Source: Tubulanus polymorphus
Taxonomy: Eukaryota > Animalia > Nemertea
Length of the DNA: 64,000 nucleotides
Direction of reading: 5' to 3'
Assembly: GCF_964204645.1 (NCBI RefSeq)
Contig: NC_134031.1
Span: 868,001 to 932,000, forward strand
The first letter of the stretch is position 1, and each line of letters begins with the position of its first letter. A model generated the notes under the pieces. The model was given only the letters and a program-made list of their open reading frames with translations, searched no databases and had not been told where the DNA came from. This document shows, in pieces, positions 22,705 through 49,919 of the stretch. The position numbers and the translations under genes are program-made.

Positions 22705-23239
22705 CAGATATTACGTGTGGTCTGTGGTAAACACCGTAGGTTTACCGATCGAGATTTAGATTACAAAGAAAATTAGACGAAAGTTGCGCGAACAAAACGG
22801 AAACGACGATGTTTGATCAGTGAAACGACGTAGAGAGGATATAAACTTATAACTAGTGCTTCCGAGGCAAAATAAACACGTATCAATATAATCTGCAGTT
22901 TCCGTTCAAAACCCATCCGAGCAGTAACACCACCTAATGGTGTATGTACTACGTGATAGTAGCGAACGTTAAACTGTTCAAGACACGTAATTCATGTAAT
23001 TAGTAATCGATACATCACAGATCTATGAAACCAATCCTCAATTTCTACGTTTTAATCGGCGCAAAAAAGTAAAGGTTATTTTTGTATCTAGAAAGTCACG
23101 ATATATTTTCTCTGTTTATCCGAATTCATCGTACATCATTTAATGAAAATAACAACCTATAATTCTTCATACATAACTCGTACATCATAAACATGTGACG
23201 ATATCTATATACAATCTAAACACGGTATTTAAAATGAGA

Positions 23240-24963: not shown

Positions 24964-27900
24964 CTATCCGGAAACGATGTTAGGATGAACGGCTGTTATT
25001 GAAGTAATCGACCGTGGAGTGGCTGAACCAAAATCCGATTCAGAATCGGACATGTCTTCTGAATTGTCTTCTGTTGTGAATTCGTGTACTTTAGTTTGTT
25101 GGAACGGAGGTTTTTTCAGCAATCTGATTATCAGAAATATCGGTCCGATCAGAAGAACCAGAGCACCCATAGCAGAACCAACTGCAACTGCTATTACAGG
25201 GAATGCATCTACCGGTGCATCAGTAGCGGCGAGTGTGGTGATCACTGAAATATGATTATAACATAGTTTATACCTAGATGAGGAGGCTTCATTAGCCTTG
25301 CATCATTCAATGTTTCCAGTTTGAGAGAAAGTACAACATGCAGCACAAACGTTTTTATCACAAATAATTTTCACAAATAATGTTCTAGTTTACCTTTGGA
25401 AGTTGTCTGTTTAGAAATTGTTTCTGATGCGGTTGTTGATAATGTCGTAGTTGGCATAAGTTGCTTCAGTGTCCCGTAAACCTGAACCTCACAGACAGTA
25501 AGAGGGCTCCCGATAGAGTTCTGTTTCATCAACACGACATACCGACCTACAGCACCAGGTGGACATTCTATCAGCATAATCTGACCTTCTTTTAATTGAG
25601 AAATTGTGCCACAACTTGTGAAATTTCCAGGTTTTCTAGGTGTTGTTGGTGCTACAGTTGATCCATCTGTTGTAGTGGTATCATCATTAACAGTAGATGT
25701 TGCGCTAGAAGTTCCAGACGTTTGACCGGTGTTAGGATCAGTAGACGTTGTGACAGATGAACTTGAACTTGCTGTCGAGGTTAGATCTGATGCTGATGAT
25801 GATGTTGATGCTTCTGACAATGTTGTATCTTGTATTGAAGTCGGGCTTTCTATAAGCAAAACATCAGTGTTGTTTTCATTTACCTATCATTTACGAAGGC
25901 CCAAACAATTTCGAATTTTACGTTCAGAATAGAAACTGATACAGCTTAAGTAATAAGTGTCAATTGATTTCAAGGAACTACGGAGTTCGTAGAAGATTAC
26001 AAATAACCTCTTATAAACATAGGCAAATAATTTCCAAAGAGGAACTTTTTTTGCATCCAGTGCAGGTCATTACTGATGTAAAGGAAAAATGATAAGGAGG
26101 ATTATATTTTCCTCCTCCATGAGGACCTACCAGGAGATGTTGACGCGGTCTCTTCATCTATTGGGTTTATGTTGTACAGATCACTTGGTAAAAATTCATC
26201 CACGACAAAGATAGTAACGTTCGAAAAATCTGATCCTGAAAATGTACAAACATTCGGAATCTTGAGGACTGAAATATGTCGTGCCATAACGAATTAACGG
26301 AGCCAAATTAGAATTTTTGATATGTGTACCATAATTATCTGCGACATTTGTAACGACGACTTTCTCAACTTGATAAACATTCACCAGAAACACGGCCCAC
26401 CATTCAGTTCTGTGGACACCAGCAGTGCGAGAACATTTGGTATATTTGGATTCGATATTTCCATCAGTGGCCAAATCACTTGTTAAATTCGACGTTGTTG
26501 AACTTTGAGATGTCGATTTATTCAATGCCAAATTTTCTACAGTATTCTCTGGAAATTAAGAAAATTTGATGTTTTACTTAGGTTTCATATTTTCATCTAA
26601 ATAGACATTTTCAAAACGAACTTTTGAGGCCGTCTAATAAAAATGTTTGACAACCAATCGTTACAGTTCTAATCGTTACCACATTGACCTGACAAACTTA
26701 CAAACCCAGTCAATCACTACGACTCCGTGGTCCAGTGGTAAACACGCTCACCTGGTTTGCTAGCGGTCCCTGGTTCGAGTCCAGCTGGAGAGCTATAGCA
26801 ATTCTTTTTTGTGAAAATGATTGGAGGGAAATTTCCATTTGGGAATTTAGAACTGCCCCTGAAGATGCCTTAGATGGAGCTACCTGGAATTTAGCAATAC
26901 CTTTTGTGGCATTGTACACATATCCCGCTACTTCCACTTCACACAATACGATAGGATTAATTCGACTCCGTTTTACTATTGATAAATATCGGCCCCAGAT
27001 ATTCGGTTGGCATCGTGTTTCCTGAACCTCAGTTGTTACGTAGTTAGTCGCGGTATCCTGTGTACAGTAAAAGCGAGAAGTTCGGTTTGTGTCAGAGTCG
27101 TGCCATTTCGGAGACAACCATATCTCATAATCCGTTAGCCATACATCTGTAGAAAATAAAAGGAACTTATGCAGACAAAGTATGAAGCTTTTCTTAAGAA
27201 CAGACATTCAAACTTACTTCCAATGCCATCCGTATTTATTATAACAACTTGTTTGACTTTATATTCAATCTCAAGATCGACGCTCCACCATATCGTCTGT
27301 TCGTCCTCGTTAACGGTTATCATGGTGCAGCGTGACATATCGTAAACGCCATCGGCTGCCAGGTTTGATAGTTCTCCGCCCTCAGCGTGATCAGATTGTT
27401 TACAGTTTTTACCAACTGCAGCGTTCAGTACGACATCTGTAATGCAAGTTTTGTCACGATTTCTTTTTCTAATTCTTCGTGGTCATTTTCATTGATGCTA
27501 CGATTGAACTGCATTTCATCTTTAAAAAAACGTTAAATAAAGACCTCATACCTTTAGAGCATTTATCGATAATACAGAATTCCCAGCGTGATCCCGTAGT
27601 TTGATAACACCAGGGGAAATTTTCATCCAAACGTCGGCAGTAATTCTTTGCCGCTATGTGTGACTGTTCAGGAAAATCTTTCGATTTTGTATCGAATGGA
27701 TGCGATTGCGGTTTCTGTCTATTCCAACGTTGACATTTGTTTCCTTTTTCTGTCTGGCTTTGTGTTCCGTGATATTCGACGCCTTCTGATGTCCATACAC
27801 ATTCTTCCCCTGTTACCAGATAGATATTATAAAATGTTTTAAATTTAACATTAAGTTTTCATTTCAATTTTCTATAAATTGAGATACATCGATACTCTCC

Positions 27901-30900
27901 AACACCAAATGTGATTGGCAGAGTCTATTTTGTCACTCGTTTGATGGGATGCAAGGAAGGCTGTAACTAAAAGCACCTCGGATGGCTTTAGAGGTTGGTA
28001 CCGCTGGTTCCAATTAGCTGAAAATTAGGAACCAACGTGGTGGATAATCTCACTGATAAGAACAAGCCTATACCATAAAAGATACGACAAAAGATTTTAC
28101 CGAATGCTTCTGTTCCATAGATGTCTATTTCACAGATAACCAGTGGACTGGGATGAACTGGTTTGTAGACGAAAACATGCGATGCCATCACTGGTTTTAT
28201 GCATTTCACCTCCGTAACCGAGTCTGTAGAGATTGTTACGTCATCTGCGCATAATTTCAACTTGCCGGATGCTCGACTGGACGACACCTTTGCAGGCGCC
28301 AAGTCAACGAAATCGACCGAAGTGTAAATATGAATATCTTCTTGGGCTTTAAGCGGAAAATATAGAATACAATTTTATTCCCACAATTAAAAAGTAGAGG
28401 GGTCCGAATTGTTACTTGAGCAAATATGTCTATCAGGAAACATTTCTGACTCTTTTTTCCATTTATTGAAGGATTTGATATCATATATCTTTCAACACCG
28501 ACTCATTTAACAACCGTTTTATTGAATAAAGCTTAGAATACAATACATTTACCTCACACATTATGTCAGGATGTAAACGCCGCACATAATGATTGATACT
28601 CACTACAACAGTTTTCAGGTCCGAAGAATCGGATTTTTCGTACAAAATAAACCGCATGGTACAGATCTATAAACCAATATCTATCATGGCTAGTATAACA
28701 AGAGACAGGCGGAGGTGCTTTAGTTAATTCTACGGTTGCAGCGCGTTCTTTACGTGGTACTATTCCATCCAGCGCGAGATGTCCGCCATTTCTAACTGCT
28801 CTGAACGGCTGAACGGCTATATTACCTAAATCAAGATAACACAAGTCAAATTTTCGATGTTCTCTTTTCACAAAATGGGGATGATGATAACATTAGCTAG
28901 AGGCTCATGTAATTCGGGAGTTTGTGTTGCGATACTGTGGAGGTGCTTCCTACAGCTGCTAAAAGTATGATATATGAAATCCCACACTTACGTGTGTAAT
29001 GAAAAATGTAGTCCAAAATGCTCGTAGTATTCTTCAGGAATACTTAAGTTATGATAAATCACTAAGCAATCCTTTTCGGACTCTTTTTTCTTTTTGTTAG
29101 GATTTCAGATTATAGTTATATAACATGGACAGTGATTTTCGTCAATGCTTATCATAATGATATTACATATTTGACGTAAAAAGGCACTGTTACTTTTTAC
29201 TTCAGTTAGCTGTGTGCTTTGATGTCAAATGTGACGCCAGGTGCATACGTACCCCTGTATTTAGACTTCACGGTATAAACGGAACGTTGGAATGACCGCC
29301 CCGCAAGATGAGTCGCATGCATGTGTATCAGAGCTACAGTTTTACTGATGAATTACCTGTGTGTTTTGCGCTGTATATCTTCACTTCTCTAAAGACGAGT
29401 GCACGAGTTCTTGGTTGTGTGATTTTGACAAATTTACCTCGACGTATCGGGTTACAGGGTACCTTCCTAGTTTCCAGCGACCTCACAATATTATTTCCCT
29501 TGTCATCGAAACATAACTCGTAGTTTGAATTATCTTCTGATACATCGATTGTCCATTCCCACGACATACACGGCGCTAGTTCTATACAAATATTAGATAT
29601 TAGAATATTAAACAACTATTTCATATTGAGGCGGCCATCCTGGTCCATGCGCTTGTACGGCGGCCATCTTAGGTTCATGAACAAATGCGGCCATGTTGAC
29701 TCAAGCTTGGCTTCTGGTCATTTTGGCAAAATGTCAGTAGTTAAAGTCAAAATCATTTCGATATCATTGCATACATTCATCAAAATCCAAGAAGATAGTA
29801 AAATATATGTTAACGATATGAATGTTTTTTGCGATGCATTAATTTCACTGTCTGTAGTTTGATTATCGATGACTTACGTATCGGTTTTTCACAGTAATAT
29901 ATATGATCGCTGCCTGTACATGAAATATCGTTCCATCTGCCTCTTGAGTCTCTATTCGTCACACAATCTTCACCAGATTTATCGTTCGGTTCATCGTCAT
30001 CCCAGTTTAAGAAGCGCGGCTGAAATATGAATCTCAGCATCAGCTTCGAAATGATTATATATATTATACCACTGATTATACTGTACCGGTTTCGTGTCGG
30101 AATTCCAAACAAACTTATTTTCATCCTTGATATCATTTAATCCTATGGTAAAGCTATTCGAATTATCAGCTGCAATGAAAAAAAAATTAAACATCTTGGG
30201 TGAAAAATGGAATGAACTCTCAGTGAGTGCATGTTTTTTACCCAGGAAGTCTAGAGTACATTTTGTCTATGACGCCTCAATAGAGTATGAATTCGATTTA
30301 GGATTTTAAACGATTTCATGTTTAATTTACGGAAAGTAGATATGCTATAAAAAGAAGCGGGCGCCGAATATCGAGTCAAGTATAACATACCCTGAAGCCA
30401 TTTCCACGTCTCCCAGTTTCTAATTGTTATAAGTTGGCCTCCTTTCTTCTCACATTCAGTCCTGGCCTCATTAGCATTCAACAACTTCTTCGAAAATGAA
30501 GCCAAACACTTTTTATTACTGGGATCTAGTTTCCAGTCCGGATCGTTACCACATGGATAGTTGTCCAATTCTGTATTGAAACGGTCGACATAAAATAAAT
30601 AAGTTTCTAAAATGAATTATTTAAATTTTCTCTCTGCATGACTCATCGAAATCTACCAAAAAGTACAGTAAAACTGACCGCGGTGACGACCAACTCTTTT
30701 GATTAATTCGGACAAAATATTTCAACTTTGTAAAACGTATAATTCGATCATTATCTCGGCCGGTGTCCGGTGATTGGCTGAGTTAGGCGAGGTTTACTGT
30801 AAAAATCTAGTTTAGCTATACATTATATGATATAAAGTAGATGACAATCTTAGCAGTCGATCCAACGGAATAAAGACTCCAAAGTTTAATCATTAGTGAA

Positions 30901-33900
30901 CAAAACGACATCCTAGGTACGTAGATATTATGTCAGTCCTTGCCCATTCTGACGATAACAAATTTCCTCAATGTTTTGTATTATGCAATGTTCAAAATAG
31001 AAATATCTCACCATTGTTTGTACATACAGGCATCTGTATAGAGACCCATGCGACATCTATTGTAAATGCCAATTCAACTTTCCACCAATTAGGACGTATT
31101 GTGACCGTTCGTAACGTCATCGAAAATCGTGATAGAAAGTCTGGATGCACATCACCATCGATAGCATTATCAGCCTGATAATGCGAGTAAGTCGTGAATT
31201 GAGATGCTTTTCCGGTTACCGCAAAATTACCTTTGGGAAAATGAGCCATGAGATGCTGATGAAAATTTACCGACAAAGACCACAACTCATTGAAATTTGT
31301 CGACTAAACATAGGAATAAGAAAGTTTACACTTTTTGATCAACGCCACATCAGTCTGGTGAATTCCTTTATTGGAAATGTCGCTATGATATTTTCCTACA
31401 TGTGAAAACTAAAGAACGTAGCTAAATGAATACCTACCATCAAATGGGAGGCCATATACCTCAAGCTCAGCAAGATTCAGTGCTGCAGTAGGACCACTGA
31501 TATCCTCTATATAAACATATACATATCTACCAAGATTTCCACGCGTACAGTGCAGGATTAAAGCGTGATTTTTAGCTATTACTGTCGCTTTTTTATTCTG
31601 GTAGCACATTCTACAGTGATTGAAGTCAACAGTATTGAGATCCGGATGTCGATAGCAAACTGCAACTTTTTGATGAACGCTTCCAGCTAAAAATGATGTC
31701 GAGAATATGGTTTGATTAAAAATAAATAGGGAGGTACTATATCATTCTAAACCCAGACATGATAGGATATGTTAACCTAGTATAAATCCTGTTAACACGA
31801 AAAGTAGTCGTATGTGTATGAGAAATTACGAGCTTTCGCTGTTAGTGTAAACAGTAGGCAGGTAATTTGGCAGGTAAACGGGTAGTACTGTGTAGATGAT
31901 GCGAGGACGCCTTTGGATACTTATGCCTCTCGTAGCTTGATAGGGTAAATGAATTTTTATGAAACGCCCAGACAGAAATAACGAAAGATTTCTAATAAAA
32001 TCAGTTAACCTACAAAATACTACCTCTGTTTTTCACGTTAAATGATTCTACATGAAGTTCAGTGATTGTTTGTTGGAAAATCTAATAAATAGTTAACCTG
32101 TTCCACCCGACATTAGTTTTCCAATACCATTCGATCCTGTTATCAGAACAACAGTTTTGATATTGAACCAGCCAGAAAGATCGACTACAATGAAATCCAC
32201 GTTGCTGCTGCTGGACCCTGTATATTCCGTATCCCTCCGGCCGTCCAGCATCGGACTGACAACTGTTCCCGATTCTGGTCCGTACCATTGATCACCACCG
32301 ACCATTATTCTACGACCTAACGCGAGGTTTTCTGGAACAAGCAAAATTAAAGCAATGTAACCAACTTTGCTACAAATGCAGAACATATCATTAGAGGTCA
32401 TTAATACACAATACTATTATATTACAATCCCCATTCTTATTTATTGTTGTTTGAGTCATTTTATTTCGTTTTCTTTCCGTTTGTTTCTGTTTGCGGTGTT
32501 TATGATATTCTATGCAAATAAAGATGACAGTTTTAAACGTACATCCGGCGGGCACCAACTACTCACAACGATACAGCAGACTTAATCAACAGCCGAAATA
32601 GCTCAGTTGGGAGAGCGTTAGACTGAAGATCTAAAGGTCCCTGGTTCGATCCCGGGTTTCGGCAAATTCTTTTCCAAAAAGATGACTTGAATTATTTTAT
32701 AAGCTTTAATCTATATTCTCTTACCACCGATTAACGGGTTCCCATACACCTCTACCTCACATAGAGCTAGTCGAATCGACGGCTGATCCAGACCCTGTTG
32801 GATGACTACGTGTCGACCGATTTCATTGGTTAATATCAGAAAATTTTCGCCGAATCCTATGAGACCAGTTTTTCGGAAAAGGAATTTCACATCGAAGTCT
32901 GTTGGTTTTATTAGCTGTCCGTGAAACTCAGTAGTCAAATAACCCTCTAGGTACGACATTCTGTAGTCTGCAGATAAACAACAACATTACAGATACAAAC
33001 ATTTCATGTGATAAACTTCCCAAAATTCAAGGAATCTGATAGAATACGAATTCATAGAAATATTTGTCTTTTTCGATTTGTAGGATACAGATCCTCTTGG
33101 TCTGGTATCGCAGAGTGGGTAGTCAAGAGTAAATCTTCGACCTCAGTGACAAACACAATAGAAATAATTAAAAAAACTGTCGTAAAACTGACAAATTATT
33201 CTCGGAGATTATTTGCCCCAATTTCAATGAAATTCCACTCATGTATAAAAACGATTTATCTTTATTGGAAATCATCTAAATGTTTTCTCTTCCCTGAATA
33301 ATCTATAAAACAGAAAACAACTAAACCTGCGAGTGGAGTGGCGCTTGCGACGACGATTACTTTACGAATGTGATGTAGTTTCGCTAAGTCAACGTGCCAC
33401 CAATTCTGTTTCGCGTTATCAGAAACTGCACAGATTGAGTAGAAACTGTTATAATACGAATCAGGTTCAGTTTGTCGACTCGAATCGACGGCTAATGCGG
33501 GCACTAAATTTGCTTCATTGCCATTAACTCGGAATTGTGCAGACTTTCGAGCTGCTAAGTTTTCTGAAAATGAAGAAAAATCACTGGTTCGGTTATCAGT
33601 TATCAGTTATCCGATTTTTAAACTTCCACTAACAATAGGTTTGAAGGATAACTATGTTTTCCATCGGTGAAAGTAGTTATGAAGTTATTGCAATGAGCGC
33701 AGTTGAGGTTCGTACAAAAAACGGTATAGAGATAACGAACAATCCCATGTAAAAATAACGTAAGAGACAATGAAAATCCCATCATCGATGATTATAGCAG
33801 AGATTGATTTAGTGAGATTGTTCATAAGCTTCTAAACTGCGAATACATCAGTTTATGAAATAATCAAAATAAACATGGCGCTGATTTACCGAAACTATTT

Positions 33901-36642
33901 CGCGAATAAACTTCAACTTCACAGATGGAAAATCCGTATTTTTGTTTCGTTATTCGTCGAATGATGACGTAACGACCGGAAGCTTCAGATGTACAGATAA
34001 ACCTCGTGACTCGTCCCGTCACTAGTTCACCGACGTCACACAACGTGTAATTATCTGGATTCGCTTCTAATGCGTTTTGAAATAGATCCGTAACGATCAC
34101 CTCGACGTATTCGTTACTGAACGCTGAAAAAAACGTGCAGAAATTATAATTATTACATACAGTTGATCTGTCGCACAGCGCGTCATATTGGACGTCACTC
34201 AACTAATTCCACCGCACGTGACGCGGGGAAACCCTCGGAAACATGTTTCTGTCTCCCGTTTCCATGTTCTACATGTGTCGTATGTGTTGAGCTTGCAGTA
34301 GTAACAAATTGACTGTCATGTCTGTGTTGACGGCAAACAATAAGTGTTTCATGAACCTCAAATAAGATCTTACTTCACTTATATATTTACCACCTCAGTT
34401 AGTGCATATGCGCAACATGAATAAATCTGTCTCAATTACTATCGCCAGTATCTAACCGAAAGGTGGCCTTACAAGTCACTCAGCGTACTTACAAAACTGA
34501 AATTCAGTTCGTTATTGCGATACAGTAATATTGGCCGTCAATATTGTGACTTCCTACTTACAATTAGTCGCTCGCACTTGAGGCCAATATGACGCACTGT
34601 GACATCATGTGCATACATAAAGAGGTCGAACAGATGACGTCACGGTTTGTTGGTGAAAACGTAACAACAAAAAATTTGATTCACAGATTTCGGAGGAACT
34701 GCCATGAAATCACCACCAATATGGCGTCGGTCACGTGATCAAAACACGTGAATGCACGACCTCAATACGGATATAAGAATTTACCATTCTGACGAGCTAA
34801 AACGAGCACTTCTCTGATATCATACGATTCGCCTAGATCCAGATACCACCAGGCCCAATCCCACCAATCAGGTTTAGCCTCAGAACACGAGTACGGTTTC
34901 GAGAACGCTTCCGGTTCGTGGCGACCATCGATTGCTAGTTCCGGTCCCATGTTCGATGTGGATAGAGGCGCCATGTACGCTTTTGTAAACAGATTTATGT
35001 TTTCTGAAATAATTCAATACATTTCAATAAGTATAGATATATTTAAAGGAATCGTGATAACCCGGTGTAACAGTTAACGTGAAAACTAGTAGTACTTTGT
35101 AAGTTTACTGAAATCATATAGTTTTCGTGTGCTAGTGCACAGAGTAGCTTTATCGGGTAAATGATGGGATTTTGATGAAGCTACTGCTATACACTGTATG
35201 ATGCTCGTTTCGTAATAAGGTCAGTTAACCTACACAGTTACCTTTTTTCAATCCTTATTACCTTATTATCTATTATTTATTATTAACGAAAAAAATTAAG
35301 CATATTTTAGAATTAATAGAATTAATAGAATTAAGCATATTTTTATACTGTATATAAAATTGTTTTTTCGTTAATATAGCTACTTATAACCTACACAGTT
35401 CTACCTGTCTGCTCGCTTATTGATTAGATCTAAATTTCTAACTATTCAATTGTCCGTTGATCGTTGAATAAATTACCTCCAATTTGTTTTGAATTGAGCT
35501 GCGGTGCTGAAATAGAGGACGCACAAACGAATTGAGATTCAAATTTCATACGAATAAAAATGAATGCGATTTTTTCTTAAAACTTACATTTCAATGTATA
35601 AAGCCAGTCCCACCAGACTCGTGTGTTAGTTGATGGAACGGGAAGTGATGGGTATAAGATACAACCGCCAGTTTTTGCATCAGTTTTAATTCCGGCCAGA
35701 AATGCTTTACACCTTGGAACCTCACTACATTTCTGTTCACATCGATCGAACGTCCAAGACCTATAACCCCCTAAATGGGCCACTCCAGTGTACGACTGAT
35801 GTGCGGTGTAGTTTGACCGTAACTCTTAAAAGAAGACAACTACATGAGACGAAAAGATACACAATATCCGTGTATGATGAATAACGGAAGAAATCCCGCA
35901 GTAAATTCATTGGCTGAATTTGTAGTGGGATTTCTCTCGTTAAGACAGCTAGATATAACCGACAAATAATCTTCACTCCGAGTGTAAGGAACGGCCTCAA
36001 TGGTTACCTCTTCTATTAAACAAAGTTCGATCATTTCGTATGGTTGATGTGCCGCATCTCGGGGCACTTTTAATATAACATTTACCGGTACTTGGGTGAA
36101 GGATAAATAGATCACACCGACTGTCAATATCGCAGTAATAACGACATTCGTCAGGAGTATGAATTGTTATCATATATAAATCTTTCGCGTAGCATTCACT
36201 TTTAACAAGTCGTGAGTATCCAGCAAAATAGTTAGCTGAAAAATAAACGAAATGTAATAATTTGTTTTTTTAGAAATCTACAAAGCAGGATCCAGTTTTA
36301 TAAAAATGATTAAAAACTCTAAAATCTAGATACGAATTAGACGTTTTTGTGACATTGTGGCCTACATTTTACACAATTACACTTCCATACTTACATCATC
36401 AATTAAATAATCAACTATAAACAAACAAACTTTATTTATGAGAGGTGCAGCTATCCAGTTCATAACTCAAAATGTATCGATTCATTATACTGTATGTACG
36501 GCTTACGAACATAAGATATACATATATACTACTATTATAATCGAAATATTCGACAGTAAGACAACTTACAATCTAAACTGACTCCATTTTCCACGATGAT
36601 TAACGCTATGAACGAATGAATCGCGAATAATAAGTTGTTCAT
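24964..36642 (-). CDS. Mosaic type-I membrane lectin receptor, copy A (~1694 aa): SP-PAN-PAN-FTLD x3-FTLD[nested C-type lectin]-FTLD-kringle-FTLD-FTLD[S/T insert]-TM-acidic tail
   Basis: 24 exons: 36570-36642 (MNNLLFAIHSFIALIIVENGVSLD), 36008-36235, 35588-35824, 35477-35506, 34785-35003, 33890-34123, 33327-33563, 32725-32967, 32098-32331, 31438-31686, 31012-31230, 30391-30570, 30087-30169, 29878-30019, 29357-29581, 28604-28825, 28101-28346, 27552-27809, 27218-27436, 26901-27146, 26330-26548, 26131-26235, 25394-25849, 24964-25244. They sum to 5085 nt in one open frame. FTLD motifs ENLA..K, A.DG, WW.VDL, GRYV, LCEVEVY; CTL IGLND..E, EPN, WND; kringle Y.G..S.T..G..CQRW, NYCR, PWCY, WEFC. Confidence 0.88.
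26721..26793 (+). mobile_element. tRNA-derived SINE head or tRNA pseudogene in an intron of copy A
   Basis: A-box tggtccagtgg and B-box ggttcgagtcc at tRNA spacing, poorly paired anticodon arm, downstream T run; not present in the matching intron of copy B. Confidence 0.55.
32592..32664 (+). tRNA. tRNA-Phe (GAA)
   Basis: GCCGAAATAGCTCAGTTGGGAGAGCGTTAGACTGAAGATCTAAAGGTCCCTGGTTCGATCCCGGGTTTCGGCA: canonical 73-nt metazoan cytosolic tRNA-Phe, followed by TTTT. Confidence 0.98.
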
Positions 36643-37775: not shown

Positions 37776-40700
37776 CTATCCGGAAACGATGTTAGGATGA
37801 ACGGCTGTTATTGAAGTAATCGATCGTGGAGTGGCTGAACCAAAATCCGATTCAGAATCGGACCAGTCTTCTGAATTGTCTTCTGTTGTGAATTCGTGTA
37901 CTTTAGTTTGTTGGAACGGAGGTTTTTTCAGCAATCTGAGTATCAGAAATATCAGTCCGATCAGAAGAACTAGAGCACCCATAGCAGAACCAACTGCAAC
38001 TGCTATTACAGGGAATGCATCTACTGGTGCATCAGTAGCGGCGAGTGTGGTGATCACTGAAATATGATTATAACATAGCTTATACCTAGATGAGGAGGCT
38101 TCATTAGCCTTGCATCATTCAATGTTTCCAGTTTGAAAAGCACCATGAAGATTTTATTAATGATCATTTCATTCGTACTCAAGCGTATATCTAAATTATT
38201 ATTTATTATTTTGGTGAATCTAATTTTAAGAAAGCGCGAAGATTCAGCATTCTAATGAGTCCTGGTTCTACACTCAGCGTTCTAATGAGTCCCAGTTCTA
38301 CACTCAGCGTTCTAATGAGTCCCAGTTCTACTCTCAGCGTTCTAATGAGTCCCAGTTCTACACTCAGCGTTCTAATGAGTCCCAGTTCTACACTCAGCGT
38401 TCTAATGAGTCCCAGTTCTACACTCAGCGTTCTAATGAGTCCCAGTTCTACACTCAGCGTTCTAATGAGTCCCAGTTCTACACTCAGCGTTCTAATGAGT
38501 CCTAATCCTACACTGAATTAATGAAGTCTTTTTGATAGTCTTTTCATATAATCTTTTTAGATTTACCTGTGAAGGTTGATTCTGATGCGGTCGCTGATAA
38601 TGTCGTAGTTGGCACAATTTTCTTTAGTCTCGTGGTTGTTGATAATGTCGTAGTTGGCATAAGTTGCTTCAGTGTCCCGTAAACCTGAACCTCACAGACT
38701 GTAAGAGGGCTCCCGATAGCGTTCTGTTTCATCAACACGACATACCGACCTACAGCACCAGGTGGACATTCTATCAGCATAATCTGACCTTCTTTTAATT
38801 GTGAAATAGAGCCGCAAGTTGTAAAATTTCCAGGTTTTCTAGGTGTTGTTGGTGCAACAGTTGATCCATCTGTTGTCGTGGTATCAGCATCGTTAACAGT
38901 AGATGTTGCGCTAGAAGTTCCAGACGCTTGACCGGTGTTTGGATCAGTAGACGTTGTGACAGATGAACTTGAACTTACTGTCGAGGTTAGATCTGATGCT
39001 GATGATGATGTTGATGCTTCTGACAATGTTGCATCTTTTATTGAACTCGAGCTATCTATAAAAAAACATCAGTTTTGTATTTTGCGTCAAAGTTTGTTGC
39101 AGCTTAACCTTATACAAACATAACTGATTTTTAAGTGGATTATTTCCATAAGGAATTTGTTTGCGTAAAGTGCAGGTCAATATTGGTGTGAAGAAAAAAT
39201 AGTCAGAAAAAAAAGAAAAAAAAGCAGGATGACATTGTCCTCCTCGGGAGGACCTACCAGTAGATGTTGAAGTGGTCTCTTCGTCTATTGGGTACAAGTC
39301 GTACAGATCACTTGGTAGAAATACATCCACGACAGAAATAGTAACATTGAAAAAATCCGATCCTAAAAAAATGTACAAATATTCGAAATCTAAATTCTAC
39401 AAATATTCGATATTCAAATAACTGAACTACGAAGAGCCATAACGATCTTACGGAGGCACATTTGATTTAATTTTTGATATGTGTACCATAATTATCTGCG
39501 ACATTTGTAACGACGACTTTCTCAACTTGATAAACATTCACCAGAAACACGGCCCACCATTCAGTTCTGTGGACACCAGCAGTGCGAGAACATTTGGTAT
39601 ATTTGGATTCGATATTTCCATCAGTGGCCAAATCACTTGTTAAATTCGACGTTGTTGAACTTTGAGATGTCGATTTATTCAATGCCAAATTTTCTACAGT
39701 ATTCTCTGGAAATGAAGAAAATTTGATAGATAATCTACTTTTGACTAGTACTGCTATCTTAATAAGCTAGGGTTCTTTTGTGAAAATCTTTTGAGAGAAA
39801 TCCCCTGGCCTCTCCAGTCGTGAACTAAGAACTGCTCTTGAAGATCCCTTGGATGGAACCACCGAAAAAAGCAATACCTTTTGTGGCATTGTACACATAT
39901 CCCGCTACTTCCACTTCACACAATACGATAGGATCAATAATTTGACTCCGTTTTACTATTGATAAATATCGGCCCCAGATATTCGGTTGGCATCTTGTTT
40001 CCTGAACCTCAGTTGTTACATAGTTAGTCGCGGTATCCTGTGTACAGTAAAAGCGAGAAGTTCGGTCTGTGTCGGAGTCGTGCCATTTCGGAGACAACCA
40101 TATCTCATAATCCGTTAGCCATACATCTGTAGAAAATAAAAGGAACTTATGCAGACAAAGTATGAAGCTTTTCTTAAGAACAGACATTCAAACTTACTTC
40201 CAATGCCATCCGTATTTATTATAACAACTTGTTTGACTTTATATTCAATCTCAAGGTCGATGCTCCACCATATCGTCTGTTCGCCCTCGTTAACGGTTAT
40301 CATGGTGCAGCGTGACATATCGTAAACGCCATCGGCTGCCAGGTTTGATAGTTCTCCGTCCTCAGCGTGGTCAGATTGTTTACAGTTTTTACCAACTGCA
40401 GCGTTCAGTACGACATCTGTAATGAAAGTTTTGTCACAATTTCTTTTTCAAATTCTTCGTGGTCATTTTCAGTTATGCTACGATTGAACTGCATTTCATC
40501 TTTAGAAAACATTAAAGACCTCATACCTTTAGAGCATTTATCAATAATACAGAATTCCCAGCTAGATCCCGTAGTTTGATAACACCAGGGGAAATTTTCA
40601 TCCAAACGTCGGCAGTAATTCTTTGCAGCTATGTGTGACTGTTCAGGAAAATCTTTTGATTTTGTATCGAATGGATGCGATTGCGGTTTCTGTTTATTCC

Positions 40701-43700
40701 AACGTTGACATTTGTTTCCTTTTTCTGTATGGCTTTGTGTTCCGTGATATTCGACGCCTTCTGATGTCCATACACATTCTTCCCCTGTTACCAGATAGAT
40801 ATTATAAAATGTTTCAAGTTTAATATGATGTTTCCATTTCAATTTTCTGTACATCAAAGCCCTCCAACCCCAAATGTGATTGGCAGAGTCTATTTTGTCA
40901 CTCGTTGATGGGAAGGATGCCTGGAAGGCTGTATCTAAAAGCACCTAAGATGGCTTTAGGTTGTATGTCAAAGCTTCTGGGATGGTATTAGGTGTTAGTA
41001 CAATGCTCCAATCAGTGAAGAATTAGGAACCAACATGGCGCATATTCCCATTGATAGTAAATGATACGACAAAAGATTTTACCGAATGCTTCTGTTCCGT
41101 AGATGTCTATTTCACAGATAACCAGTGGACTGGGATGAACTGGTTTGTAGACGTAAACATGCGATGCCATCACTGGTTTTATGCATTTCACCTCCGTAAC
41201 CGAGTCTGTAGAGATTGTTACGTCATCTGCGCATAATTTCAGCTTGCCGGATGCTCGACTGGACGACACCTTTGCAGGCGCCAAGTCAACGAAATCGACC
41301 GAAGTGTAAATATGAATATCTTCTTGGGCTTAAAGCGAAAAGAAAACATTCGACCACAAAAACAAGTAGTGAGGTCCGAAATGTTTCTTTGAGCAAATAT
41401 GTCTACCAGGAAACATTTCGGAGTCGTTATATCATCATTAAAACATCGACACAGAACGTTTCATCGAATATAGGTTAAAATACGATGCGTTCAAATCACT
41501 TCAGGATGTAAACGCCGCACATAATGATTGATACTCACTACAACAGTTTTCAGGACCGAAGAATCGGATTTTTCGTACAAAATAAACCGCGTGGTACAGA
41601 TCTATAAACCAAAATCTATCATGGCTAGTATAACAAGAGACAGGCGGAGGAGCTTTAGTTAATTCTACGGTTGTAGCGCGTTCTTTACGTGGTACTATTC
41701 CATCCAGCGCGAGATGTCCGCCATTTCCAACTGCTCTGAACGGCTGAACGGCTATATTACCTAAATCAAGAAAGCACATGTCGAACTTTCATTATTTTTT
41801 TAACTACAGAATTAAAAGGAACTTAAGCAAGAGCATGGACGTAAAAGAGTCCGTGGCTAGAGGGACATGATGTAAGCATTTAAATGAAGAGGCTTCGTTG
41901 CGATAGTGCGGAACCCCAGTAGAGTGAGTTTGTGGCTCGACCAATGGCTTCCTGGAATAGACGTGAAATGGTTCCCAAATTGTGACGTTTTACTTCAGTT
42001 ATCCGCGTGCTTTGACGTCAAATATGACATATGACGTCAGTTGCACCGTCTTCCCGCAAGATGAGTCGCATGCATGTGTATCAGAGCTACAGTTCTACTG
42101 ATGAATTACCTGTATGTTTTGCGCTGTATATCTTTACTTCTCTAAAGACGAGTGCACGAGTTCTTGGTTGTGTGATTTTGACGAATTTACCTCGACGTAT
42201 CGGGTTACAGGGTACCTTCCTAGTTTCAAGTGACTTCACAGCATTATTTCCCTTGTCATCGAAACATAACTCGTAGTTTGAATTATCTTCTGATACATCG
42301 ATTGTCCATTCCCATGACATACACGGCGCTAGTTCTATACAAAATGAATTGGGTCATCTCGACCATCTTGCACTTGGCCATCTTGGGTTCATTCACGTAT
42401 GCGGCGATGTTGGTTTTAATCACATCATGCAAGAATTCGGCAATGTATCAGTGGCTAAGGCTCAAATGATTTTGCCGAGTTATTGCGTCTATTCTCAAAA
42501 ATCCAAGATGCCAGTTTTAATCCAAATCCGAAATCCAAGATGGCCATCCTGGTCCATGCGCATGTTAGGCGGCCATTTTGGGTTCATGAACAAATGCGGC
42601 CATGTTGATTCAAGCTTGGCTTCTGATCATTATGGCAAAATATCAGTAGTTAAAGTCCAAATCATTTCGCTATATCATTGCATACATTCATCAAAATCCA
42701 AGAAGGTGGCCAAATATATGTTAAAGATATGAATGTTTTTGCGAGGCATTAATTTCACTGTCTGCAGTATGTTATTATTAATGACTTACGTATTGGTTTT
42801 TCACAGTAATATACATGATCGCTGCCTGTACATGGAATATCGTTCCAACTGCCTCCTTGAAAATTCGTCACACAATCTTCATTATTTTTATCGTTCGGTT
42901 CACCGTTGTTCCAGTTAATGAATCGTGCCTGTAATGTGAATCTAAGCAAAACTATTCCTATCAGCTTAGTAAAGATTATATATGTATCGTTCATATTGTA
43001 CCGGTTTTGTTTCGGAATTCCAAACAAACTTATTTTCATCCTTGATATCATTTAATCCTATGAGATAGCTTCTCGAATTTTCGGCTGCAATGAAAAAATT
43101 ATACATCGTGGGTCAAACATGGAATACTCAGTGGATGCTGGTCGGTGAAATTGTTTACCTACAGCGGGCGCCACTTTATCTATGACGCCCCAATATTTGT
43201 GTTGAATTCGATACTGGATTTAAGACGACGCCTTGTTGAACCTTCGAAATTTCATGTTTATTTCACGGAAAGCAAATATCATAAATACAGTAAAAATCAA
43301 ATAGCGAGTCATTTAAATCATAAGTACCACATCTACATGTACAACATACCCTGAAGCCATTTCCACGTCTCCCAGTTTCTAATTGTTATAAGTTGGTTTC
43401 CTTTCTTCTCACATTCAGCCCTGGCCTTATTACCATTCAGCGCCCTCTTCAGAATAGAAACCAAACACTTTCTATTACCAGGATCTAGTTTCCAGTCCGG
43501 ACCTTTACCACATGGATAGTTATTCAATTCTGTATGGAAATGGTCGATATAATGTAAAGCTTTTAATTATTGCGATGTTCGTGTGTTTTCTGCCTTATTC
43601 ACTATGATTTGCCGAACAGTAGAATACAGTAAAGCTGAACTTTTAGTGATTCGGACAAAAATTGAATCATATTCTGACTTCCGATTGGATCGTCGGATAG

Positions 43701-46700
43701 TCGCTTATCTCAGACCCAATTTAATCGGTTTCCATTCGTTGGATGAGTTAGGTGAGGTTGACTGTAAATCTAGTTTAGAAGTCGGAAGTACTCTTAGCGT
43801 TCAACGTAATAAATATCTTAAAGATTTTAAAGGTAGAAATTCTGTGAACAAGAAAACAACCAGAAGCAGCTACTATGGATTTAATCACCATCAGATATCT
43901 CACCATTGTTTGTACATACAGGCATCTGTATAGAGACCCATGCGACATCTATTGTAAATGCCAATTCAACTTTCCACCAATTAGGACGTATTTTGACCGT
44001 TCGTAACGTCATCGAAAATCGTGATAGAAAGTCTGGATACGCATCACCATCGATAGCATTATCAGCCTGATAATGCGAGTAAGTCGTGAATTGAGATGCT
44101 TTTCCGGTTACCGCCAAATTACCTTTGGGAAAATGAACCATGGGATGCTGATGAAAATTTACCGACAAAGATTATAATGATTCGAAATGTATCGAGTACA
44201 ATGAGGACTTGGAAATAAAAAGATGACGCATTTTGATTGATGCGACATCATTAACGTTGATCTCTGTATAAGAAAAGTTGTAATGTTTTCTCCTACATAT
44301 AAAACTAAAGAATGTAACTAAATAAATACCAACCATCAAATGGGAGGCCATATACCTCAAGCTCAGCTAGATTCAGTGCTGCAGTAGGACCACTGTTATC
44401 CTCTATATAAACATATACATATCTTCCAAGATTTCCACGCGTACAGTGCAGGATTAAAGCGTGATTTTTAGCAATTACTGTCGCTTTTTTATTCTGGTAG
44501 CACATTCTACAGTGATTGAAGTCAACAAAGTAGAGATCCGGATGTCGATAGCAAACTGCAACTTTTAGATGAATACTTCCAGCTACAATAAAAAAACGAG
44601 GGGGTTTGATGTATATTGAATAAATACGGAAAAAAAGATAGTACATTCATATCAGGTAAACAATCGTACAAAACGCCAAAGCAGGTAATACTATGTAGAC
44701 TACTTAATGTTGTTGGATATAACGAGCTAGGGCAGTGTCCTTCCTGATACCAGGGAAAACTGTCTGGAGCTCCTCGATTCCTACGACCGCCGTGAATCCC
44801 AAAGTTCACGGCATTCCATTGACAAACGTGTTAGATGTTTTCCTACGCATGATTTGTGGAAAAGCGTATTTCTGTTGTGGGCACTCACCCGATGGTCTGT
44901 GATCGTCATACATACTCTTGGCCCAGTTTCCTGAGAAGTTATTGGTGGTCACTACATCATCACTCCACATAGTTGTACCATGCACTCTGCCTTGTCTCTG
45001 TACCTTACTGTATACGTGCGCTGTTTCATTGAACGCTTCACGCTTGGCAATTACTTCCACTTAGCCTTCTTCGAGAGCGTGTTAGCTTTACTGGCCTTAA
45101 GTTCTCTCACCTCAACTGTCATCCTATCAGCGTGCTTTATCCTGTTCCTAACCCTGGCATGTTTTACCGCTCTTCTGACCTTGGAGACTATATGTTTACT
45201 CCTGAATGAGTAGTTGAAACTCCCATACCTTTATTTGGTATTCTTCCCTGTGATTGAGGTAAGGGTCAGGCGTTGATCACTATCCATCACTTTTTCATCC
45301 ACTGTTGGCAACTAACATGCAACATTAGTTGGCCCATAGCTGGGGACAAGATTGGTGAGTGATTGGAATAATCAGACTGATCAAAGGTGAGTGCCAGGGC
45401 ATGCTGTCCAGTGCCAGTGGGCCATGCACATCACGGCTTTAGGTCTCAGCTTGCTCCGAAGGCAAATGAGTCCTTGATGGAGCTGTATTATATTTACTAA
45501 TAGCCAAATCTTGTAATTTCGAATAAAATCAGTTTAACCACAAAGTACTACCTGTTTTCACGTTTAAATGATTTGAAATGGAATCAATGGTTTTATTTTG
45601 GAATATCTGATTATCTAGATAGTTAACCTGTTCCACCCGACATTAGTTTTCCAATACCATTCGATCCTGTAATCAGAACAACAGTTTTGATATTGAACCA
45701 GCCAGAAAGATCGACTACAATGAAATCCACGTTGCTGCTGCTGGACCCTGTATATTCCGTATCCCTCCGGCCGTCCAGCATCGGACTGACAACTGTTCCC
45801 GATTCTGGTCCGTACCATTGATCACCACCGACCATTATTCTACGACCTAACGCAAGGTTTTCTGGAACAAGCAACATAAAGCAATGTTATAACCATTCTA
45901 ATTTCAATAACTTCTCGTCACGATCATTGTATGATTTATTGAATGAATATTATATGTGTGTAGTGGTCAGCGATTACTCACAACGATACGACATAGCAAT
46001 TCAATTCAAATATATTTAATCACCAGCCGAAATAGCTCAGTTGGGAGAGCGTTAGACTGAAGATCTAAAGGTCCCTGGTTCGATCCCGGGTTTCGGCAGG
46101 TGCGCATATTTTTTGTCATGTTGCCTTCTCTTTTGATACATGTAAATCGTGTTTCAAATTTTTTTCTGAATCGAAATACTGTCAAATGTCGGTATTCTCT
46201 TACCGCCGATTAACGGGTTCCCATATACCTCTACTTCACATAGAGCTAGTCGAATCGACGGCTGATCCAGACCCTGTTGGATGACTACGTGTCGACCGAT
46301 TTCATTGGTTAATATCAGAAAATGTTCGCCGAATCCTATGAGACCAGTTTTTCGGAATAGGAATTTCACACCGAAGTCTGTTGGTTTTATTAGCTGTCCG
46401 TGAAACTCAGTAGTCAAATAACCCTCTAGGTACGACATTCTGTAGTCTGCAGATAAAAATCGACATAGATACATTCATTTCATGTGATAATCTGATAGAA
46501 TTCTATTTCATAGAAATGCGTATCGTTCTATATACTCAAAAATGGCAACACACTTGTAAATTTCATCGACTCGGTATCATAGACATTAAAGTTACCCTAA
46601 ATACACCCCTGACCTCAACCTGGGCACGGTTTCATAGACAGGATACCAAAGTTACCCCGAGGGATACATCCTCAACCAGGGTGACAACCAATATAGTAAC

Positions 46701-49700
46701 AATGAGAAGCTATTGTAGTAATTGAGACGAATTTCCAAATTTCCCACTCATTAACATAACGCCTTCCACTCCTCCCTCCCATGTGAATGAAACACAGCCA
46801 AGGGACGCACGAAACCCTTTAGATGAAACCTAAAACTAATTGAAAAATAGATATATTCCCGTCGTACGTAATCTAAACGATTTCGTTACGTATTTGGATA
46901 TGTCCAAATTAACTCCAGAAAATCTACTAAACGAAAAACAACTAAACCTGCGAGTGGAGTGGCGCTTGCGACGACGATTACTTTACGAATGTGATGTAGT
47001 TTCGCTAAGTCAACGTGCCACCAATTCTGTTTCGCGTTATCAGAAACTGCACAGATTGAGTAGAAACTGTTATAATACGAATCAGGTTCAGTTTGTCGAC
47101 TCGAATCGACGGCTAATGCAGGCACTAAATTCGATTCATTGCCACCGACTCGGAATTGTGCAGACTTTCGAGCCGCTAAGTTTTCTGAAAATGAAGAAAA
47201 AATCACTGGTTCAGTTATCTGATTCTTAACCTTCCACTGAAAATAGGTTTAATGTATACTGATGACTATGTTTTCCATCATTGAAAGAATTTGCGAAATG
47301 ATTGCAATGAGCACAGTTGTGAGGGAGGTCGTGCAAAAACGGCATGGAAGATAATGAACGAACACAATCTGAAGTTCATTTTTGTCCGACAGTTTCGAGA
47401 TTTATTAAATCCCATTTTCACAGAAATCTTCAGAGAAAACAGTAATGAATATTGCTTTATAGAAATTCAAAAAGCGAAAATTGAAAAAAAAGCAAAAATT
47501 CGATTATTCCGTGATGAAACGAAGTCGCTTGGCTCAGTAGAAAATAAACATGGCGCTGATTTACCGAAACTATTTCGCGAATAAACTTCAACTTCACAGA
47601 TTGAAAATCCGTATTTTCGTTTCGTTATTCGTCGAATGATGACGTAACGACCGGAAGCTTCAGATGTACAGATAAACCTCGTGACTCGTCCCGTCACTAG
47701 TTCACCGACGTCACACAACGTGTAATTATCCGGATTCGCTTCTGCTGCGTTTTGAAATAGATCCGTAACAATCACCTCGACGTATTCGTTACTGAACGCT
47801 GAAACAAACGTGCGGAAATTATAATTATTACTTACCAGTTGATCTGTCGCACAGCGCGTCATATTGGACGTCACTCAACTAATTCCACCGCACGTGACGC
47901 AGGGAAACCCTCGGAAACATGTTTCTGTTTCCATGTTTCCATGCATCGTGTGCGTTGAGCTTTTAGAAAAATCAACAAGTCAGTGGGCAAAACAATAATT
48001 GTGACATGAATCACCGCAGTCAAACGTAATATTGGCCGTCACTTATTACTTGAATCAGTCACTCGTACTTAAGGCCATTGTGACAACACTATTGCATCAC
48101 GTGCATACAGGGTCAAGAACTTACCATTCTGACGAGCTAAAACGAGCACTTCTCTGATATCATACGATTCACCTAGATCCAGATACCACCAGGCCCAATC
48201 CCACCAATCAGGTTTAGCCTCAGAACACGAGTACGGTTTCGAGAACGCTTCCGGTTCGTGGCGACCATCGATTGCTAGTTCCGGTCCCATGTTCGATGTG
48301 GATACAGGCGCCATGTACGCTTTTGTAAACAAATTTATGTTTTCTGAAATAATTCAATACATTTCAATAAGTATAGATATATTTAAAGGAATCGTGATAA
48401 CCCGGTGTAACAGTAAACGTGAAAACTAGTAGTATTTTGTAAGTTTACTGAAAACATATAGTTTTCGTGTGCTAGTGCACAGAGTAGCTTTATCGGGTAA
48501 ATGATGGGATTTTGATGAACGAAAGAAGCTCGTATTTCTAATAAGGTCAGTTAACCTACACAGTTATCTTTTTTTCAATCCTTATTATCTGTTGTTTATC
48601 ATTAACGCAAATTATTAATATAGATTCATAGTTTAATATTACATTCAACTTTGTACTATTTCTTAAGTAACATTTTGTAAATTATTTTTAGTAGCAAATA
48701 AACTGTTTATGTACTTGCTAATAATGTCAAAAGACTTAAGCATATTTTTATACTGTATATAAAATTGTTTTTTCGTTAATATAGCTACTTATAACCTACA
48801 CAGTTCTACCTGTCTGCTCGCTTATTGATTAGATTTAAATTTCTAACTATTCAATTGTCTGTTGATCGTTGAATAAATTACCTCCAGTTTGTTTTGAATT
48901 GAGCTGCGGTGCTGAAATAGATGGCACACGAAGGAATTGAGAAAAACAAGAATTAATTCCATTTTACGAGTAAAAATGAATGCGATTTTCCTTTCCGCTT
49001 ACATTTCAATGTATAGATCCAGTTCCACCAGTTTCGTGAATCAGGAAATGCGATAGGAATGGATGGGTATAACAAACAAGAACCAGTTCTTGCATCATTT
49101 CTAATTGCAGACAGAAATGCTTTACACCTTGGAACCTCATTACATTTCAGTTCACACTTATCGAACGTCAAAGAGTTATATTTCCCTAGATGTCGCGAGT
49201 TAGTGTGCCTGCGATGTGCGGTGTAGTGTGATCTTAGCTCTAAATAGAAGAGAATGTATAGTAAAAATGGGCAAAGGATCTTTACCCCGAGTGAAACGGA
49301 ACTGACTTGATTGTAATTACCTCTTTTATTAAACAGCTTTAGATGATTTCGTAGATGGGGATTGCTGCATCTCGGCGCGCTTTTAATCAAACATTTCGTG
49401 TCGAAAGTAAGAAATAGATCGCATCGACTTTCAATATCGCAATAATAACGACATTGATCTGGAGTATCAACTATTTTCCTATATAAATCTTTCGCGAAGC
49501 AGTCACCTTTAACAAGTCGCGAGTATCCAGCAAAATAGTTAGCTAAATAGAAATACACGAAATTCATTCAGTTCGATTTTAAAGAAATCAACACAGTTTT
49601 GTCGAGATCTATAAAACTGATTAATAAATGTTCAATCGAGTTACGAATTAGACGTTTTTGTGACATTGTGGCCTACATTTTACACAATTACACTTCCATA

Positions 49701-49919
49701 CGTATATCATCAATTAAATAATCAACTATAAACAAACAAACTTTATTTATGTATCGATTCATTATACTGTATGTATGGCTTACGAACATAAGATATACAT
49801 ATACCACTACTATATAATCGAAATATTCGACAGTAAGACAACTTACAATCTAAACTGACTCCATTTTCCACGATGATTAAAGCTATGAACGAATGAATCG
49901 CGAATAATAAGTTGTTCAT
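37776..49919 (-). CDS. Mosaic type-I membrane lectin receptor, copy B (~1703 aa), same architecture as copy A
   Basis: 24 exons: 49847-49919, 49321-49542, 49003-49239, 48882-48911, 48125-48343, 47565-47798, 46948-47184, 46204-46446, 45628-45861, 44334-44582, 43904-44122, 43350-43529, 43002-43084, 42790-42928, 42110-42334, 41539-41760, 41083-41328, 40527-40784, 40198-40416, 39878-40126, 39487-39705, 39258-39362, 38567-39055, 37776-38056. All indels relative to copy A are multiples of 3. Confidence 0.88.
38243..38514. repeat. 30-bp minisatellite, ~9 copies (cactcagcgttctaatgagtcccagttcta)
   Basis: Near-perfect tandem array in the last intron of copy B only. Confidence 0.95.
46026..46098 (+). 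tRNA. tRNA-Phe (GAA)
   Basis: Identical to 32592-32664; T6 terminator ~11 nt downstream. Confidence 0.98.

Follow-up and report, generated by a model that had tools for sequence, protein, structure and literature searches.

Which protein is encoded by the two large genes that lie in tandem on contig NC_134031.1 of the nemertean Tubulanus polymorphus (assembly GCF_964204645.1), and is it likely to be a functional receptor? We analysed a stretch of 64,000 nucleotides (positions 868,001 to 932,000 of the forward strand, referred to as the window, whose numbering is used below) in which an earlier reading of the bare sequence, here called the original prediction, had described a pair of membrane receptors built of PAN, F-lectin, C-lectin and kringle modules. 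The two genes, copy A and copy B, were found to have a third intact paralogue, copy C, elsewhere on the same contig. With a probability of roughly 60%, we consider all three to be functional paralogues, each coding for a type I membrane glycoprotein of ~1,670 residues that would serve as a multivalent glycan-binding surface receptor. The case for function follows from the 69 intact exons of the three copies and from the purifying selection acting on them.

Comparison of 24000-37500 with 37500-51000 by blastn revealed collinear duplicates in 16 blocks of 73-98% identity that include exons and introns alike, and all long stop-free segments with recognisable domains were on the minus strand. Exon models were obtained by combining these stop-free segments with splice-site scans and a base-by-base mapping of A onto B. 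From start to stop codon, copy A occupies 24964-36642 and copy B, mapped exon by exon from A, 37776-49919, both on the minus strand and both with 23 coding exons; the coding sequence of A amounts to 5025 nt or 1674 codons. No stop was found in any exon of A or B, all acceptors are AG and all donors GT, and the differences in exon length between the copies (6, 3, 3 and 33 nt) are all multiples of 3, so that the frame is kept. The introns are all in phase 1 with the exception of the one inside the C-lectin, which is in phase 0. Alignment of the 5' ends gave an identical ATG in exon 1 of A and B and a GTAAGT donor in phase 1. Two intact 24-exon genes had been predicted; both are indeed intact, but the number of coding exons is 23. 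The start and stop codon positions given in the original prediction were accurate. Between the duplicated units lies a spacer (36987-37773, from the limits of the blastn blocks) without similarity to the flank downstream of A.

Exon 1 (36642-36570 in A, 49847-49919 in B) carries the start codon and a hydrophobic, signal-peptide-like N-terminus. It is followed by two putative PAN/apple modules, PAN1 in exon 2 (36235-36008; B, 49321-49542) and PAN2 in exon 3 (35824-35588; B, 49003-49239), and by three F-type lectin domains (FTLDs), each composed of an N-half exon and a C-half exon: FTLD1 (exons 4 and 5, 35003-34785 and 34123-33890), FTLD2 (exons 6 and 7, 33563-33327 and 32967-32725) and FTLD3 (exons 8 and 9, 32331-32128 and 31686-31438), together 31438-35003 in A and 44334-48343 in B. 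The N-half of FTLD4 (exon 10, 31230-31012; B, 43904-44122) aligns with the other six N-halves and its C-half (exon 14, 29581-29357; B, 42110-42334) with the other C-halves, and the two are split by a complete C-type lectin domain (CTLD) in exons 11, 12 and 13 (30570-30391, 30169-30087 and 30019-29878; B, 42790-43529). FTLD5 (exons 15 and 16, 28825-28604 and 28346-28101; B, 41083-41760), a kringle in a single phase 1-1 exon (exon 17, 27809-27552; B, 40527-40784) and FTLD6 (exons 18 and 19, 27436-27218 and 27146-26901; B, 39878-40416) come next. FTLD7 is made up of an N-half (exon 20, 26548-26330), a 34-residue middle piece (exon 21, 26235-26131) and the first part of exon 22 (25849-25394), which holds a Ser/Thr-rich insertion and the C-part of the domain before running on into a Ser/Thr-rich, mucin-like stalk; exons 20-22 of B span 38567-39705. 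Exon 23 (25244-24964; B, 37776-38056) ends the protein with a predicted membrane-spanning helix, an acidic, Ser-rich tail of 53 residues and the stop codon. Pfam, profile and predicted-fold matches and the translations themselves bear out the domain order that had been proposed.

The individual assignments differ in strength. The kringle identity of exon 17 is certain: it scored 53.3 bits against a Pfam cut-off of 34.3 (E 3.7e-14), its translation contains six Cys, and its top PDB matches were the kringles of plasminogen (E 1.8e-48) and HGF. Exons 11-13 were confirmed by their profile matches as a C-type lectin domain; the Lectin_C matches tile profile positions 3-107, with exon 11 at 25.6 bits (cut-off 22.6) and exons 12 and 13, which are pieces of the domain, each below the cut-off alone. 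Profiles built from the seven N-half and the seven C-half exons matched striped-bass FBP32 (3cqo) with E 8.6e-18 and 7.2e-14, respectively, as well as eel agglutinin (1k12) and streptococcal fucose modules. FTLD2, taken as spliced in a RefSeq fragment described below and modelled with AlphaFold2 on an alignment of 21 family domains, gave a predicted local distance difference test (pLDDT) score of 80 and a predicted template-modelling score (pTM) of 0.81; the 11 best PDB neighbours of this model in Foldseek were all F-lectin domains, with target-normalised TM-scores (TMt) <=0.81. By profile and by predicted fold, the seven FTLDs are true F-type lectin domains. The PAN/apple assignment is weaker. 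The family alignment has four invariant Cys, and the top PDB matches of the family profile were mostly apple/PAN domains (kallikrein, plasminogen, HGF, MIC4, factor XI), at E values of only 0.002-0.2, with apple/PAN structures alone leading the list at E 0.002-0.05; when single exons were searched, PAN1 had no match and PAN2 one weak apple-domain match. A Pfam scan of 20 exon segments (all coding exons except 1, 21 and 23) returned no Sushi/CCP match, even at E up to 1, and no trypsin-like match.

Part of the gene model is reproduced by the public annotation. An exhaustive profile search retrieved XP_074654561.1 (P0008 in our collection), "uncharacterized protein LOC141908415" of Tubulanus polymorphus, with 380 residues. 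In tblastn it is 100% identical to exon 4 of copy B and 91-99% identical elsewhere over exons 4-8, and it independently reproduces the junctions of these exons exactly, with one residue at each modelled junction. Its locus corresponds to 45626-48314 of the window. The annotated protein is a fragment, since it begins at an internal Met of exon 4 and reads past the donor of exon 8 into intron 8. No longer Tubulanus model was found by the exhaustive profile search or by a word search of proteins of 745-2371 residues, and public annotation therefore misses nearly the whole of these genes: RefSeq contains neither the 18 remaining coding exons of B nor either of the other two paralogues, so that three large conserved genes are missing from the annotation of this genome. 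A protein of exactly 1674 residues (P0059) was considered as a full-length model and rejected; it is an EGF/PLAT/trefoil/FTLD protein, and the agreement in length is a coincidence.

The way in which the CTLD sits inside FTLD4 can be read from the intron positions. A phase-1 intron interrupts every FTLD at one common position, directly behind the counterpart of N-R-G-D-C-C in eel agglutinin. This position falls within the R-X-D-X4-R loop of the old sugar site, and the FTLD2 model shows it in a loop that connects two strands. It is this intron that harbours the three C-lectin exons in FTLD4, and in FTLD7 the Ser/Thr-rich stretch is inserted slightly further on than the common position. Together with the phase 1-1 kringle exon, these insertions are a classical signature of exon shuffling. 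Known structures of C-type lectin domains have their two ends near each other, which makes insertion of such a domain into an FTLD loop plausible. Exon shuffling into the phase-1 intron of the former sugar-binding loop of FTLD4 would thus have placed a whole C-type lectin domain there, and the locus offers a clean example of phase-1 exon shuffling building a domain-within-domain lectin.

The FTLDs themselves no longer carry the canonical sugar site. The fucose motif of this fold is H-X24-R-X-D-X4-(R/K) and its cation motif h2-D-G-x (PMC5712786). Judged by the family alignment and by alignment to His52, Arg79 and Asp81 of eel agglutinin, the His52 position is occupied by His in none of the seven domains, the Arg79 equivalent is kept in FTLD1 only and the Asp81 equivalent in FTLD7 only; the last basic residue of the motif falls at the exon junction and could be judged only roughly. 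About half of the domains retain the cation motif; FTLD1, 4 and 7 have AIDG or ATDG, FTLD3 and 5 have LDG, and altered forms occur in FTLD2 (VDS) and FTLD6 (YDM). Lack of a full fucose triad in every FTLD had been predicted and agrees with the eel agglutinin alignment for 7/7 domains, and the motif strings on which that prediction was based (CSEA/ARQN, CAVS/ASAT, CYTS/PENCC, CTMI/NTDG, CSRT/NVADN) are all present in the translations. The CTLD of A, B and C has EPN, a downstream acidic residue before a conserved Cys (E; D in copy C) and WND. In the C-type lectin fold these residues form calcium site 2 and select sugars of the mannose, N-acetylglucosamine (GlcNAc) or fucose type. Because EPN, the acidic residue and WND are kept in three paralogues and the FTLDs are without the fucose motif, the nested C-lectin, and not the FTLDs, is probably the sugar-binding module. 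The FTLDs, having lost the triad, would mainly form a constrained scaffold.

Comparison of the paralogues bears on both roles. The kringle, tail, PAN2 and last C-lectin exons each found exactly three close places in the 268-Mb genome, corresponding to A, B and C. Copy C (loci L014, L013, L011 and L012 in our listing) lies on the plus strand of the same contig (contig 7) at contig positions 7,971,357-7,999,610, ~7 Mb from A and B. All 23 exons are present without stops and with conserved splice dinucleotides; its introns are much longer, up to 6.5 kb, and the gene spans 28 kb. The original prediction had missed this third member, as it had the complete EPN/WND site of the CTLD, the separate history of the PAN exons described below and the RefSeq fragment of B. 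Of the 13 FTLD exons of C, 12 code for protein 81-94% identical to that of A, and the N-half exon of FTLD6 for protein 73% identical; the figure for the PAN and C-lectin exons is 64-79%.

Synonymous divergence (dS) and the ratio of non-synonymous to synonymous change (dN/dS) were determined per module. In the FTLD exons, A or B versus C gave a dS of 0.30-0.31 with dN/dS 0.20-0.21, and A versus B a dS of 0.056 with dN/dS 0.25. Corresponding values for the kringle were 0.31 with 0.16-0.18 and, for A versus B, 0.090 with 0.16; for the membrane helix and tail they were 0.32-0.38 with 0.16-0.26 and, for A versus B, 0.043 with 0.47. The PAN exons gave a dS of 0.29-0.48 with dN/dS 0.53-0.55 against C and 0.38 with 0.65 between A and B, and the C-lectin 0.42-0.51 with 0.27-0.43 against C and 0.15 with 0.95 between A and B. 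Purifying selection acts on the FTLD, kringle and tail exons, and protein evolution is faster in the PAN modules and the CTLD, whose excess of non-synonymous change over the rest was significant in all three pairs (Fisher p 7e-7 to 3e-5).

The same division marks the history of A and B. Their proteins are 94-100% identical in the FTLD, kringle and tail exons, 66% in PAN1, 62% in PAN2 and 72-81% in the C-lectin exons. In exon trees, both PAN exons grouped B with C, 20 of the 21 others grouped A with B, and exon 21 gave a tie; in PAN, copy A is distant from both B and C. The simplest account is that the likeness of A and B goes back to gene conversion or a recent duplication, with exceptions where divergence is kept or tolerated. 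The introns of A and B looked 74-93% identical by global alignment; in local alignments their alignable half was 87.9% identical versus 94.9% for the exons, which, with a contrast to the exon dS of 0.056 of about two-fold, only weakly suggests a homogenisation that favours exons. The result is a set of paralogues whose scaffold is kept alike while the likely ligand-binding modules diverge. Donation of the odd PAN cassette of A by a fourth paralogue was rejected, as the PAN2, CTLD and tail exons have no match in the assembly beyond A, B and C.

The nearest proteins elsewhere are uncharacterised proteins of another nemertean, Lineus longissimus (P0012, P0026, P0122 and P0151-P0155), P0012 being XP_064640789.1 (LOC135495796). 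In exon-by-exon phmmer searches, nine Tubulanus exons, the mucin-bearing last FTLD among them, could be placed along P0012 and P0026. P0012 is built on the plan of the Tubulanus proteins: a PAN-like cysteine module comes after the signal peptide, then about eight FTLDs with degenerate fucose motifs, the last of which contains a Ser/Thr insertion, and, beyond a mucin stalk, one membrane helix and a short tail that is acidic and rich in Ser. The tail end motif P-x-S-[IV]-[ST]-S is similar in Tubulanus, P0012 and P0155, a likeness at the level of a short motif only. Unlike the Tubulanus proteins, those of Lineus showed neither CTLD nor kringle in precomputed Pfam annotation and exon searches, and they have one PAN-like module instead of two; per-domain identity is 20-30%. 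The Lineus paralogues vary, some being without a clear C-terminal membrane helix in a hydrophobicity scan. The Tubulanus proteins thus conform to the plan of a nemertean multi-FTLD membrane family (Lineus LOC135495796 and its paralogues). As Lineus shares this plan without CTLD and kringle, the scaffold is common to two distant nemertean lineages, and the CTLD and kringle have so far been seen only in Tubulanus. The family is small and, as had been proposed, lineage-specific: three paralogues are present in Tubulanus polymorphus, and the relatives in Lineus longissimus are simpler.

Among the 150 best multi-FTLD representatives, a kringle was present only in the metagenomic P0104 and in one protein of 5602 residues, and none had all four module types. 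P0104 (967 residues, with two kringles, EGF repeats and four FTLDs) was the only other compact mosaic of kringle and FTLD in that set. The selectin-like mosaic F-type lectins of Drosophila, furrowed and CG9095, carry a CTLD beside an FTLD and CCP repeats, and the basic triad has two substituted residues in the FTLD of CG9095, furrowed having the same domain mix (PMC5712786). They resemble the Tubulanus proteins as membrane-anchored mosaics of CTLD and FTLD, but contain a single FTLD next to the CTLD and then numerous CCP/sushi modules, whereas Tubulanus has seven FTLDs with the CTLD inside one of them, no CCP, and PAN and kringle modules in addition. MsaFBP32, eel agglutinin and the Xenopus pentraxin fusion protein, which were the best sequence and structure matches, share the FTLD fold and its tandem repetition; the tandem F-lectins of fish and amphibians are, however, soluble, fucose-binding and in possession of the H-R-R triad, which is lost in all seven Tubulanus domains, and the Tubulanus proteins are predicted to be membrane-bound. 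The Tubulanus proteins may work by a logic like that of the mannose receptor family of endocytic multi-lectin receptors, in which the long type I ectodomain repeats a lectin fold that only rarely binds sugar and the short tail is non-enzymatic; the mannose receptor's ricin-type domain, FNII module and 8-10 CTLDs differ from the single CTLD and repeated FTLDs found here, and the architectures are not homologous. In plasminogen and HGF, PAN is directly followed by kringles and a serine-protease(-like) domain; in the Tubulanus proteins PAN and kringle are set apart by five FTLDs and the CTLD. Full-text literature searches and protein profile and word searches found no paper and no named or characterised protein with this domain order, in line with the original prediction, in which no named protein had been recognised. 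We therefore regard the arrangement as new within a known class of mosaic F-type lectins: such mosaics are already known, and the combination of two PAN modules, seven triad-less FTLDs, a nested CTLD, a kringle and a membrane anchor was returned by none of these searches. Lineage-specific mosaic receptors are common in invertebrates and the present importance of this one is moderate; nemertean immunity and cell recognition are almost unstudied, and the family provides a concrete candidate receptor.

How might such a protein work? We propose that the PAN pair and the EPN-type C-lectin are held out from the cell surface by the constrained FTLD array and the mucin stalk, and that these modules could there bind glycans or glycoproteins multivalently. 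The C-lectin, with its intact EPN/WND calcium site, would bind sugars of the mannose, GlcNAc or fucose type, and the variable N-terminal PAN pair at the far tip, together with the C-lectin, may set the specificity of each paralogue. The cytoplasmic tail contains no catalytic domain and no tyrosine but has a serine-rich acidic cluster. In other receptors such clusters are casein-kinase-dependent sorting signals. These features favour a capture or endocytic receptor over a directly signalling one and suggest that the tail may serve in sorting or endocytic cycling.

Several observations weigh against this receptor reading. Two small sequencing runs (X6 and X7), which may be transcriptomes although no run is recorded as RNA, yielded no contig over 34500-40499 and no instance of the sampled words. 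Among proteins of 209-665 residues, a word search brought up no transcript-derived one nearly identical to the RefSeq fragment, which is absence of evidence only, and this fragment of 380 residues, the only part modelled by RefSeq, is also the sole hint of transcription. The PAN modules, on which specificity would partly depend, are weak matches, PAN1 scoring 21.4 bits, equal to the Pfam PAN_1 cut-off, and PAN2 16.4-17.1 bits, below it. The strong constraint on the FTLDs may mean that they bind something themselves and are not a passive scaffold. Finally, the sorting role of the tail is read from its composition.

The genes could alternatively encode a ribbon-worm counterpart of oyster bindin or of the sea-urchin egg-jelly receptors, present in gonad or gametes only, whose PAN tip and C-lectin mediate species-specific sperm-egg binding. 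Oyster bindin is formed of F-lectin repeats (PMC5712786), protein evolution in the terminal PAN and CTLD modules is two to four times as fast as in the rest, and absence from the sampled runs would fit gonad-restricted expression. In contrast, dN/dS is <1 in most comparisons and only the CTLD of A versus B comes near 1 (0.95), and the fucose-competent FTLDs of oyster bindin belong to a soluble, acrosomal protein, while the proteins described here have lost the triad and are predicted to be membrane-anchored. We consider a role in gametes unlikely.

To be doubted to a similar extent is a purely structural function, in which the proteins are adhesive or mucus-anchoring membrane mucins whose FTLDs, kringle and PAN modules bind matrix or mucus proteins and have no part in recognition. 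The missing fucose motif in 7/7 FTLDs, the long Ser/Thr stalk and the strongly conserved scaffold would all suit such a protein, as would the thick epidermal mucus layer of nemerteans (PMC6410017). Conservation of the calcium and sugar ligands of the CTLD in three paralogues would, however, be unexpected if sugar binding were irrelevant, and a fixed matrix partner would explain the more rapid change of the tip modules less well than changing ligands.

A bolder version of the surface receptor reading takes A, B and C as a diversifying system of self/non-self or gamete recognition: gene conversion between the neighbours would keep the seven-FTLD scaffold uniform, selection would keep the PAN tip and the C-lectin distinct, and the C-lectin would have been grafted into the loop of a former fucose pocket. 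If true, this would be a natural re-tooling of one lectin fold as a pedestal for another. We hold this version to be quite improbable.

Sequencing reads bear on whether A and B are separate loci. They were placed on 34500-40499, which takes in the spacer together with the 5' part of A and the 3' part of B and was divided into 30 bins. Run X5, Illumina DNA from another sample, provided 1934 Mb of reads over the 268-Mb genome; these were mostly 95-99% identical to the window and covered 30/30 bins, spacer included. Mean depth was about 6.0x in A-specific and about 6.6x in B-specific bins, with an expected single-copy depth of about 7.2x, and rose to 11-15x in bins of about 97-98% identity between A and B. 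If A and B were haplotypes of a single locus, each should show about half the expected depth; the X5 depth thus fits two loci. A contig of run X1 covers 36868-37260 and bridges the edge of the duplicated unit at 36986 into the spacer. Depth was low and noisy overall, and among the pieces listed none crossed the other edge at 37774, which adjoins a simple repeat. The original prediction had allowed for a single locus assembled twice; X5 depth and the X1 contig speak for two, and the support for two real loci is good but not final. X1 and X5 also had many differences from the assembly that were common to all reads (e.g. at 34596, 34676, 34965 and 36604), so that the assembled haplotype is about 1-5% divergent from each of the two sampled individuals. 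That the genes are an artefact, either one locus assembled twice from divergent haplotypes or unexpressed pseudogenes, is highly improbable, because the fragmentary public annotation, the lack of RNA and the high heterozygosity of the species implied by an independent individual 1-5% different from the assembly are set against the copy-specific depth and bridging contig just described, many indels between A and B with a synonymous divergence of 0.38 in PAN, and open reading frames with conserved splice sites in 69/69 exons at a dN/dS of 0.2.

The introns of both copies contain further elements. In 24000-51000, Rfam recognised two transfer RNA (tRNA) genes only and no ribozyme. Both are intact genes for tRNA-Phe(GAA) on the plus strand (32592-32664 and 46026-46098; Rfam 69.8 bits, in agreement with ARAGORN) and lie antisense in intron 7 of A and B, which indicates that the tRNA gene was duplicated with its host; copy C has none at this place. 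Intron 2 of A harbours a short element (35844-35945) with 28-nt inverted arms, about 20x deeper than its surroundings in two DNA runs and with many loose ends. This is a high-copy repeat resembling a miniature inverted-repeat transposable element (MITE) and, being without an Rfam match, not a recognised hammerhead; intron 2 of B is 81 nt long and lacks it. In intron 22 of B, a 30-bp unit is repeated 9 times at 96% identity (38244-38514) and makes up most of the extra length of this intron (510 nt in B versus 149 nt in A).

Unrelated neighbours complete the window. An agrin-like LamG/EGF gene is located near 14.7-15.7 kb on the plus strand, an ENPP-type phosphodiesterase gene at 51.7-53.5 kb on the minus strand and a LamG/EGF gene from 57.5 kb on the plus strand. 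Between the agrin-like gene and copy A, two intronless reading frames of rhodopsin-type receptors (18939-20108 and 21646-22710, minus strand, 390 and 355 codons) form a second tandem pair; they are clearly paralogous and match the rhodopsin-family seven-transmembrane (7TM) profile with 38.5-38.7 bits.

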